Shown: one piece after another, positions 47,574 to 60,465 of the stretch
Numbering within the stretch: position 1 is the stretch's first letter
Layout: each line of letters opens with the position of its first letter
IMG/VR virus record: IMGVR_UViG_3300036770_003943
Location: 62,001-126,000 of that record
Strand: one strand, 5' to 3'
DNA length: 64,000 nt
The notes under the pieces: generated by a model
Databases searched by the model: none
The model's input: the letters and a program-made list of their open reading frames with translations, nothing else
Told to the model about the DNA's origin: nothing
Translations under genes and position numbers: made by a program

Positions 47574-47574
47574 A

Positions 47575-47808
47575 TTAGTTTCTATTCCATGAATCTAGAA
47601 TTAATTCTTCTAGTTTGTTTATTAAACTAGTTCCTGCTGTACTTTTTTCCCATTTCATTTCTGGACAATGTGATTCAGCAAAAGTTACTTTAGCAGGAAC
47701 ATAACAACCGCATTTACTACAAATTTTAATTTTAGTTACAAAATTTTCGCAACTTTTACAAATCTTTAATCGAGACTGCCTTAATTCTTCGTTAACGGTC
47801 TTAATCAT
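47575..47808 (-). CDS. small Cys-rich metal-binding protein (DUF6171-like)
   Basis: RLKICKSC..CSKCGC..K......CP..KW. Confidence 0.7.
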   Translation of the reverse strand: MIKTVNEELRQSRLKICKSCENFVTKIKICSKCGCYVPAKVTFAESHCPEMKWEKSTAGTSLINKLEELILDSWNRN

Positions 47809-54510: not shown

Positions 54511-54583
54511 ATTTCTCCTTTTGGCCAAAAGTGGTCTTGTCTGTAATTATATTTACAGTATTGACTAATTATCTAGGAGAAAT
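54511..54583 (-). promoter_or_regulatory. late promoter GTAAATA (54550-54556) between an anti-RBS and the RBS
   Basis: 9-bp perfect inverted repeat ATTTCTCCT (54511-54519) / AGGAGAAAT (54575-54583). Confidence 0.55.
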
Positions 54584-54634
54584 ATAGTTAAAAACGCAGT
54601 TTTTGATCAGAAACTTCGAGTAAGTATCAACTTT

Positions 54635-54853
54635 TTACATTGCGGCTACTGGCCGTTGATAAATCTTTTTGTAAAGTTCTTTGCGTTCTTCAACTTCTAG
54701 TTTACGAACTTCTCGCATTTTACGTAACTTGTTTAAATGTAAAAGACTGAGCCGTGGACGACGTGTGTCCATTTTTTCACTTTGTTGAAATTCATTATCC
54801 GCAGGATCGGCATAGCCAAGTTTTTCCATGTCTTTAACTTCTTTAAGTCGCAC
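54635..54853 (-). CDS. small basic head-module protein
   Basis: 72-aa ORF overlapping the portal stop; DTRRPRLSLLHLNKLRK. Confidence 0.7.
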   Translation of the reverse strand: MRLKEVKDMEKLGYADPADNEFQQSEKMDTRRPRLSLLHLNKLRKMREVRKLEVEERKELYKKIYQRPVAAM

Positions 54854-59714: not shown

Positions 59715-59719
59715 GGCTT

Positions 59720-59953
59720 TTGTCCCTACGTTCGGGGCCTGAAATTCTAAAGTTACTAGATAATTTAGAAAAAGAGACAAAAGCCATCATTGAAGATATA
59801 GCTACTATGGCCGTATACAGTGGACAAAGTTATCATGAATTATGGCACTTAACCAACGACGAACGCAGAATATTCCTTAAGATATTACAGAGCAAAATTA
59901 GTCTAGAAAGAGGCATAAAACCCAAAGACGTTATTACCCAGGAATTACGTTAA
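59720..59953 (+). CDS. small baseplate-hub-associated protein (gp51-like by position; TTG start)
   Basis: 77-aa ORF coupled to the gp26-like gene; YHELWHL...ER.IFL. Confidence 0.55.
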   Translation: MSLRSGPEILKLLDNLEKETKAIIEDIATMAVYSGQSYHELWHLTNDERRIFLKILQSKISLERGIKPKDVITQELR

Positions 59954-59960
59954 AGTTTTA

Positions 59961-60034
59961 AGTTGTTCATAGAACAACTAAGAATCGTGTTTTATTCACT
60001 TCGGCTCTAAAACACGATTCTTTTTATTCTTTCT
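59961..60034 (+). terminator. tandem hairpins/terminator for the plus-strand hub operon
   Basis: AGTTGTTC-ATA-GAACAACT (59961-59979); perfect 15-bp stem AAGAATCGTGTTTTA/TAAAACACGATTCTT (59980-60022) followed by a T-rich run. Confidence 0.75.
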
Positions 60035-60060
60035 TTACTGTCGAACACTTTAGTTTAGAG

Positions 60061-60465
60061 GTATAGCTTGCCAAGGTTTTGAAGTCGTACTTTGCCCTGT
60101 TAGGGGCAAAAGTAAAAAAATAACTTGCCGGAGGCCCATTATCGTAATCTATCGCTGCAACTTTTAAAGTAAGGGCGGTTACGCTGTACCCTTTTACGCA
60201 GTCCTTATAATAACGCAGAATCAAACCAGCTGATAGATGAACCAGTTTGCTCATGTGGGTTAGAATGACTCACTAGTGCCCACTCTTTTTTGACTATACA
60301 TACACTTGCCAGCGTCTTTCAAGTCTAACGCTTCGTCCCGTCATCAACGGGATAGTGGCAATCATGTCTCCGCTACCGCTCGGAATTTCCTACCCTGCGA
60401 CATCACCAGGGATTCGGGCACCTTAATCAACTTGCCGGTGCGGGCATTATCGGTAGTGCTTGGAC
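60061..60465 (-). ncRNA. candidate large structured non-coding RNA (or origin-like DNA element); family unassigned, strand inferred
   Basis: No credible ORF; 54% GC by hand count over 60301-60460; at least 6 hairpins; bipartite direct repeat near both ends. Confidence 0.5.

Follow-up and report, generated by a model that had tools for sequence, protein, structure and literature searches.

An intergenic tract of a T4-like phage encodes a structured RNA of about 500 nt from the Polynucleobacter-1 family, with two co-varying sites

What occupies the one large tract of this T4-like phage DNA from which no credible protein can be read? The whole stretch analyzed (the window; 64,000 nt) carries at 60061-60465 what an earlier note, made from the letters alone, had described as an unexplained, highly structured element of about 400 nt bracketed by a bipartite direct repeat. 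The note had read it as either an undescribed large phage non-coding RNA at the 3' end of an operon or a structured replication origin with iterons. The tract is the largest ORF-poor region of the window, as claimed: with ORFs of at least 60 aa, the sole gap of at least 150 nt was 60255-60465, and with a cut-off of at least 80 aa the gap ran from 59715 to 60465. It is set between convergent genes ending at 59953 (plus strand) and 60466 (minus strand), and its GC content is raised (53.7% at 60301-60460 compared to 40.2% for the whole window). No credible ORF lies inside. We rejected as spurious a 76-aa ORF within the RNA described below (60024..60254, minus strand), which had no family match, was matched in tblastn by its own subclade only and overlapped conserved helices; a 58-aa ORF within the tract showed neither a family match nor conservation. 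ARAGORN found no tRNA or tmRNA in the window, in agreement with the first reading of the sequence. Two other stretches of the window are without an ORF of at least 80 aa (54529-54842, 314 nt; 47574-47807, 234 nt), and neither gave an Rfam match at the gathering threshold.

A search of the whole window against Rfam 15 gave a single above-threshold match, to RF01718 (Polynucleobacter-1), at 60446-60302 on the minus strand. The match spans model positions 1-141 of 141 and scores 55 bits (gathering score 37; E 6e-11), and relatives in the same alignment scored 69-119 bits. A permissive scan of the tract (E up to 10) yielded nothing further credible, so that the absence of a ribozyme or intron core stated by the earlier note holds for the Rfam 15 models. 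Polynucleobacter-1, a candidate RNA, was described from estuarine and freshwater samples as well as from Polynucleobacter sp. QLW-P1DMWA-1; its copies mostly lay downstream of GOS11034 genes, with possible homology to PSSM2_218 of cyanophage P-SSM2, no copy was detected in a sequenced purified phage, and the motif's 3' half was not always found (Weinberg et al. 2010, PMC2864571). Our literature search found no later work on the family. The window RNA shares with the published motif the full 141-position model and its helices (hairpins H1-H3 and the three-way junction H4-H6, kept by compensatory changes), a position downstream of a small GIY-YIG gene family (the GOS11034 of Weinberg et al.) that also occurs in cyanophages, a freshwater setting (sequencing runs holding the tract sequence were mostly freshwater metagenomes) and bacterial copies in Polynucleobacter and Limnohabitans. 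The tract almost certainly encodes a structured non-coding RNA that belongs to the Polynucleobacter-1 family. The idea of a large structured minus-strand RNA was thus correct, but the RNA is not wholly undescribed, since the complete RF01718 model matches its 5' part, and the Rfam search that the note had proposed removes part of the novelty.

The known family accounts for the front of the tract only. In 53 distinct phage sequences, invariant blocks and variable stretches alternated between about 60457 and about 60065, and in the raw published Polynucleobacter-1 alignment flanking sequence is visibly conserved far 3' of the motif. Because the order of modules is the same in a second phage subclade, in divergent phages and in bacteria, a single RNA gene of about 500 nt takes up nearly the whole intergenic gap 59954-60465 (Table 1). 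The element is therefore real but longer than the 400 nt first proposed, extending at least from 60457 to about 59956 on the minus strand. We set its 5' end at the first conserved paired bases and its approximate 3' end just past the last hairpin, which is the probable end of the RNA. Compared to this gene, Polynucleobacter-1 as published is roughly the first third; missing from it are the 5' strand of the pseudoknot, the central domain, the module with the twin sites and both terminal hairpins. The folding energy of the whole tract was moderately better than that of shuffled sequences (z = -2.46).

Table 1 Features of the RNA locus in window coordinates
Feature	Position	Strand	Basis or remark
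GIY-YIG nuclease gene, 142 aa	60466..60894	-	PF19835, E 6e-30; stop codon 8 nt ahead of RNA
Whole RNA gene, ~500 nt	59956..60457	-	Conservation over 53 phage sequences, module order, fold
RF01718 match	60302..60446	-	Covariance model, 55 bits
5' domain	60294..60458	-	RNAalifold pair counts; model R2 in 69 loci
Pseudoknot PK1, 5' strand CUACCG	60451..60456	-	Pairs with CGGUAG 60378-60373, the H3 loop; outside the Rfam model
H1	60441-37/60422-18	-	5' domain
H2	60411-07/60397-93	-	5' domain
H3	60385-81/60372-68	-	5' domain
H4, three-way junction	60367-64 plus 60360-57 with 60310-07 plus 60305-02	-	5' domain
H5	60351-47/60341-37	-	Three-way junction of 5' domain
H6	60332-28/60315-11	-	Three-way junction of 5' domain
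Central domain	60146..60297	-	Model R1
H7	60283-79/60259-55	-	Central domain
H8	60253-46/60225-17	-	Central domain
H10, three-way junction	60201-197/60159-155	-	Central domain
H11	60192-88/60176-72	-	Central junction; loop ACAGCGUAACC invariant in the window's phage group
H12	60170-67/60163-60	-	Three-way junction of central domain
Twin site A, GGCAAG	60124..60129	-	Direct-repeat co-variation with site B
Hairpin H13: UUUUGCCC, loop CUAACA, GGGCAAAG	60090..60111	-	Between the twin sites
Twin site B, GGCAAG	60067..60072	-	Co-varies with site A
15-bp hairpin, loop GAGCCGAAGUGAA	59980..60022	-	100% complementary inverted repeat; fold; relatives
Last hairpin: AGUUGUUC, loop UAU, GAACAACU	59961..59979	-	Same position as terminal hairpin of bacterial and divergent phage RNAs

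Beyond twin site B, and separated from it by a spacer, the 15-bp hairpin matches by position and loop motif the penultimate hairpin of the relatives, bacterial RNAs included, which has a GAGCGA..AGCGAA loop. The same hairpin is common to both directions of transcription, and on the plus strand, where a T-run follows, it would act as a terminator for the genes on the baseplate side. The RNA is not of one form throughout. In three viral contigs (L129, L131 and L120) the 5' domain follows directly after the GIY-YIG gene with a strong Rfam match (90-119 bits), and twin sites lie downstream, with no match to the central-domain model at E < 0.01; this fits the remark of Weinberg et al. on the 3' half, and the family thus includes subtypes with a different middle part. 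In five loci of the second phage subclade (L002, L008, L031, L034 and L061), the 77-146-nt spacer between the GIY-YIG stop codon and the RNA carries an additional conserved CUGCGUAAACCGC. This is similar to the invariant H11 loop (ACAGCGUAACCGCC), so that in that subclade the start of the RNA may lie further upstream.

Support for the fold came from substitutions among relatives. All helices listed in the earlier note were recovered (CACC/GGTG, CCCTG/CAGGG, TCCG/CGGA, the three-way junction, GTGGG/CCCAC, AAGGG/CCCTT and TTTGCCC/GGGCAAA), and each of them holds its pairing via compensatory changes in a comparison of more than 100 related sequences. The note had proposed looking for covariation among homologous spacers downstream of this GIY-YIG family, and it was found both by RNAalifold and by helix-wise counts. 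RNAalifold predicted 65 pairs over 25 phage representatives, 37 of them with compensatory changes. As an all-against-all covariation scan was swamped by the split between two clades, we counted helix by helix instead, with slid controls. The covariance model R1 (central part; 60297-60146), built from phage sequences only, found the central domain in 35 bacterial loci, directly 3' of their 5' domain, at 30-55 bits. In the joint phage and bacterial alignment of this domain 94.2% of cells were paired, compared to 33-46% when the 3' partners were shifted by 1-3 columns; 21 of 29 pairs changed on both sides, and the covariation score was 0.62 compared to 0.05-0.14 in the slid controls. For the 5' domain, model R2, which located it in 69 loci, was built on the RNAalifold structure with the pseudoknot strands replacing H1-H3 and served for searching only. 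Paired cells amounted to 96% in H3, 95% in H4b, 95% in H5 and 89% in H6, against 11-68% with the partner column slid. H1 and H2 were misplaced in the R2 alignment (76% and 65% of cells paired) and are supported in the phage-only alignment. The eight pairs of H13 likewise show compensatory changes and G-U alternatives in relatives.

The same comparison shows a new pseudoknot, PK1, which locks the 5' domain and in which the invariant 5' end CUACYG (60456-60451) pairs with CRGUAG (60378-60373). Over 69 phage and bacterial sequences 99.5% of PK1 cells were paired. One of its pairs occurs as UA in 41 sequences, CG in 13, GC in 7, AU in 5 and UG in 2, and the window itself has a compensatory C-G in place of the U-A of most relatives. 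The RF01718 model begins 3' of the 5' strand of PK1. Across the supported helices the minus strand has 230 G-U cells compared to 43 A-C cells, and it is therefore minus-strand pairing that is under selection.

Uncultured T4-like phages of freshwater, a large lineage, carry the RNA. Its exact motif-core pattern occurred in 71 viral contigs of IMG/VR, one of which (IMGVR_UViG_3300036770_003943, 231,776 bp) is identical to the window over the 640 nt compared. The window RNA thus sits in a 232-kb T4-like viral contig, whereas Weinberg et al. had detected Polynucleobacter-1 in no sequenced purified phage. The 53 phage loci share one gene order: gp47-like, gp46-like, Hc1-like, 142-aa GIY-YIG, RNA and convergent baseplate genes. 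This conserved order bears out the placement of the tract at the 3' end of a 47-46-Hc1-GIY-YIG gene string. The Hc1-type histone H1-like protein (67 aa, PF07432; 60891-61094, minus strand), encoded between the gp46-like and GIY-YIG genes, has the same position in all related phage loci, and its stop codon overlaps the GIY-YIG start (ATGA). Of the 52 phage loci whose upstream flank is long enough to show it, 51 have the GIY-YIG gene. Its protein has a nuclease domain at residues 3-129 of 142 and no DNA-binding domain, keeps invariant GIY-YIG-type residues and is 64-80% identical across phage loci, compared to 54-86% for gp46. We rejected a Seg-like free-standing homing endonuclease cassette on account of this near-constant presence, the gp46-like divergence rate and the lack of a fused DNA-binding domain. 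In one locus (L067:11415-11927, plus strand; IMGVR_UViG_3300009422_000007), a 170-aa PD-(D/E)XK endonuclease (PF24608) takes the place of GIY-YIG while Hc1, the RNA and the baseplate genes stay put; one nuclease type has taken over the spot of another.

A profile of the GIY-YIG protein matched at least 590 viral loci. Among the best 80 of these, the central domain lay 160-330 nt past the GIY-YIG stop codon in 31, a twin-site pair with identical 7-mers was found downstream in 51, and the Rfam domain began within about 30 nt of the stop codon in 8 of 11 tested; most of the 80 thus have the RNA behind the gene. The family is encoded in 414 deposited phage genomes, mainly cyanophages; other carriers are Methylophilales phage Melnitz, Acidovorax phage ACP17, a Variovorax phage, the Sinorhizobium phiM12 group and Stenotrophomonas phages. 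Three cultured phages that we inspected (ACP17, Variovorax V45v66 and Melnitz) have neither a gap nor the RNA after the gene. Blastn of the tract and of a divergent relative against GenBank phages, and of a bacterial copy against PLSDB plasmids, returned no match, and these deposited phages and plasmids thus hold no detectable copy. In many deposited phages (e.g. NC_041997.1 9483-9905) and in PHROG 447 the small GIY-YIG family is labelled "NAD synthetase", which looks like a propagated mis-annotation, since Pfam assigns the family to the SegE GIY-YIG domain.

A pattern search also located the RNA in genomes of freshwater Burkholderiales, at 41 loci in all; the carriers are Polynucleobacter, Limnohabitans (among them the complete NZ_CP171842) and others, and a few of the loci are on MAG contigs that are phage fragments. 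No genuine bacterial locus has the GIY-YIG gene, its sole carrier (L077) being such a fragment. Instead, a DUF6641 gene diverges from the RNA in nearly all bacterial loci, and about half have a catalytic-domain-only tyrosine recombinase of 188-195 aa on the same strand, 750-1430 nt downstream. Full-length integrases and an AAA ATPase are encoded nearby, and the bacterial copies look like parts of integrating islands of roughly 6 kb (for example L110:2287-4299, L106:3309-7212 and L096:1571-7756 in Polynucleobacter and Limnohabitans). This neighbourhood of DUF6641, small recombinase and integrase is absent from the published description of Polynucleobacter-1. The small recombinase is missing at L079, L091 and L109 despite ample flank, and housekeeping genes follow the RNA there. 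Only one bacterial locus has a tRNA gene next to the RNA. Polynucleobacter sp. MWH-HuK1 carries the RNA twice on one contig (L078 and L110). For DUF6641 we found no literature, no lead in the protein atlas beyond the family itself and, using its AlphaFold model (pLDDT 79), no match among solved structures; neither a DUF6641 nor a small recombinase gene occurs in the 64-kb window.

The bipartite direct repeat of the tract exists, with AACTTGCCGG at 60122 and 60429 and CATTATCG at 60137 and 60445, each at only these positions within the 64 kb. Its conservation is limited to the subclade of the window, and it does not bracket the element: its 5' copy falls within the 5' domain and its 3' copy about 170 nt ahead of the 3' end. 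The four CTTGCC copies (GGCAAG on the minus strand) start where the note had placed them (60067, 60124, 60305 and 60431) and are not equivalent. One lies in the H1 loop and another is the 3' strand of H4, and neither co-varies with the remaining two. The conserved repeat proper is this short remaining pair, site A (60129-60124) and site B (60072-60067). Between lineages the sites take more than 20 variants, almost always identical within one RNA. In the first phage set, where the variants at both sites include GGCAAG, GACA.., GUCAAG, UGUCAAG, AGUCAAG and AGACAAG, the variable core position (GGC/GAC/GUC) agreed between A and B in 49 of 50 sequences. The 7-mers of A and B were identical in 65 of 73 further, pattern-scored loci, which hold about 17 different 7-mers. 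Divergent phages have GGAUAAU, AGAUAAU, GAAUAAU, GGAUGAU, GGAUGAA, AGAUGAA, GGAUGAG, ACAUGAA, GCAUAAU and others at both sites, and bacteria have AGCGAAA, AUCGAAA, AGAGAAA, AGCAAA., ACCAAAA and GGAGAAA.

As read from the sequences, the bacterial twin sites sit in hairpin loops starting with CUCA or CUAG. C-U-N-R precedes the sites in divergent phages and bacteria; in the window this holds for site B (CUUG) and not for site A (CUCC), and a loop at site A of the window's subclade would be an extrapolation from the bacterial and divergent phage versions. One half of the bipartite repeat, CGAUAAUG (60144-60137), looks like a remnant of an ancestral site A, which reads ..CUCGGAUAAUG.. in divergent phages. 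No complement of the sites was found inside the RNAs, the 3-kb flanks gave nothing consistent, and the RNA 5' end showed no co-variation with them. We rejected a U/G-rich stretch near the domain junction as a partner, as it pairs with any purine-rich site and does not co-vary. An identical, lineage-specific pair of sites on a conserved core suggests recognition of a partner that is present in two copies.

Three metatranscriptomes hold contigs covering relatives of the RNA, and the window's own sequence occurred in no RNA run. In one metatranscriptome, depth was 37-43 at 60293-60414 compared to 0-12 over the flanking minus-strand genes and 0 over the plus-strand genes. Depth over the RNA was thus 3-4 times that of its flanking genes, with the proviso that the contigs are unstranded, may derive from DNA, and that a conserved sequence attracts relatives; this is weak support for transcription. 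A scan for promoter and terminator consensus sequences within the tract gave no excess over shuffled sequence, and the 8 nt that follow the GIY-YIG stop codon show no evident promoter. With just these 8 nt between the stop codon and the first paired base, co-transcription with the nuclease gene is the reading we adopt.

The explanation that we favor combines these elements. The RNA would be transcribed as the tail of the gp47-gp46-Hc1-GIY-YIG operon, possibly be cut out of that transcript, and work in trans as a stable scaffold. Its conserved core would bind, or do, something common to all carriers, and the twin sites would recognise a lineage-specific two-copy partner, which might be a protein dimer or a 6-8-nt nucleic-acid sequence occurring twice. 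Taken as a blended whole, a Polynucleobacter-1 RNA of about 500 nt acting in trans as a twin-site scaffold seems to us somewhat the more probable account; the trans-acting twin-loop mechanism as such is put forward tentatively, as somewhat less likely than not.

Among the alternatives, the RNA could be a cofactor of the adjacent DNA-cutting or DNA-joining enzyme, supplying target recognition with the twin sites as short guides. In phages the candidate would be the GIY-YIG or PD-(D/E)XK nuclease, and in the islands the tyrosine recombinase of 188-195 aa. The 142-aa GIY-YIG protein has no DNA-binding domain of its own, a PD-(D/E)XK nuclease substitutes at the same spot in L067, and a catalytic-domain-only recombinase comes after many of the bacterial copies, on the same strand. 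The RNA moreover begins at the nuclease stop codon, which recalls the layout of TnpB and its omega RNA, and a conserved scaffold with short lineage-specific segments is a guide-like layout. However, the single gene order of all phage cases may count as one ancestral event, and enzyme and RNA come apart in both directions: the three checked members of the 414-genome GIY-YIG family lack the RNA, the RNA persists in L067 where the GIY-YIG gene is swapped out, and the small recombinase is missing at three bacterial loci. The lack of a twin-site complement within 3 kb also speaks against guides, and we regard a cofactor role as unlikely. In its most specific form, a programmable module whose pseudoknotted core would dock on a DNA enzyme without a DNA-binding domain, and whose identical 6-8-nt sites would pair with a repeated or symmetric target to set the site of cutting or recombination, the idea is more doubtful still. 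We hold an RNA-guided enzyme low because the phage arrangement is one ancestral event and both the protein family without RNA and the RNA without protein exist. If true, it would be the first case of a GIY-YIG nuclease or tyrosine recombinase guided by RNA, and the module might serve in conflicts of T4-like phages with integrating islands in the same hosts.

A ribozyme or self-processing RNA, with a catalytic pseudoknotted core and the twin sites as two processing sites for one recognition element, is about as improbable as the cofactor. Long invariant unpaired runs between covarying helices, together with the pseudoknot, would suit catalysis, and identical flanking sites suggest two equivalent recognition events; against this, no Rfam 15 ribozyme or intron was matched (E up to 10), no internal guide complements the twin sites and we recognised no motif of a known catalytic core. 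A group I or II intron was rejected, as there is no core match and the flanking genes are intact and uninterrupted. The tract might also be a cis-acting 3' untranslated region that stabilises or terminates the gp47-gp46-Hc1-GIY-YIG messenger and has no role of its own, as its place directly after the last gene of the operon and its strong hairpins at the end facing the convergent gene would allow. We think this very unlikely: termination or protection would need far less than some 500 nt that include a pseudoknot, invariant loops and two three-way junctions, and the bacterial copies have an upstream region of their own, diverge from DUF6641 and have no nuclease gene ahead. Least likely is an element acting at the DNA level, a replication origin or recombination site with iteron-like or arm-type repeats whose transcript might prime, for although two repeats that co-vary within each genome resemble iterons or sites of a cognate protein, flank the inverted repeat H13 and in bacteria have recombinase and integrase genes nearby, the helices, H13 included, pass through G-U, which would be A-C on the other strand (230 compared to 43 cells), the co-varying repeats number just two among four non-equivalent GGCAAG copies, and no replication-initiator gene was seen adjoining. 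The structured origin with iterons suggested by the earlier note is thus disfavoured by selection for pairing on one strand, less so for the twin-site module than for the rest.

Other known RNAs offer partial parallels to the window RNA. The omega RNAs of TnpB and IscB (HEARO) and the IS110 bridge RNAs are likewise structured, lie beside a small gene for a DNA enzyme in mobile DNA and combine a scaffold with short lineage-specific segments; the two specificity loops of bridge RNAs recall the twin sites. The two variable segments of the window RNA are identical, whereas those of a bridge RNA read two different DNAs. We rejected membership in these groups: no TnpB, IscB or IS110-type/DEDD gene, HEARO match, transposon ends or target was found, and the neighbours of the window RNA are GIY-YIG, Hc1 and gp46/gp47-like genes. 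GOLLD, ROOL and OLE resemble it in being several hundred nt long with an intricate conserved fold, in having phage or prophage-like carriers and in that their function was unknown at discovery. They have no sequence or model similarity to it and are usually found near tRNA genes, whereas the window RNA follows a nuclease gene, and twin co-varying sites are no described feature of them. The YUNR U-turn loops of CopA, Sok and RNA I provide a further likeness, in that the bacterial and divergent-phage twin sites after C-U-N-R would present 6-8 bases for pairing. Those RNAs are short and lie opposite their target, whereas the window RNA is ten times larger and has a conserved core, with no target found nearby.

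Large RNAs with an intricate fold and unknown function are few, and several have opened up new biology, as HEARO did when it proved to be the IscB guide. What was catalogued in 2010 as an orphan motif is just the front part of an RNA of about 500 bases, and Polynucleobacter-1 is now firmly placed in genomes of T4-like phages, whose likely host bacteria carry the same RNA on what look like small integrating islands. The co-changing pair of sites, with its more than 20 variants, would mark where the RNA recognises its partner and gives an experimental handle on an abundant RNA of freshwater phages.
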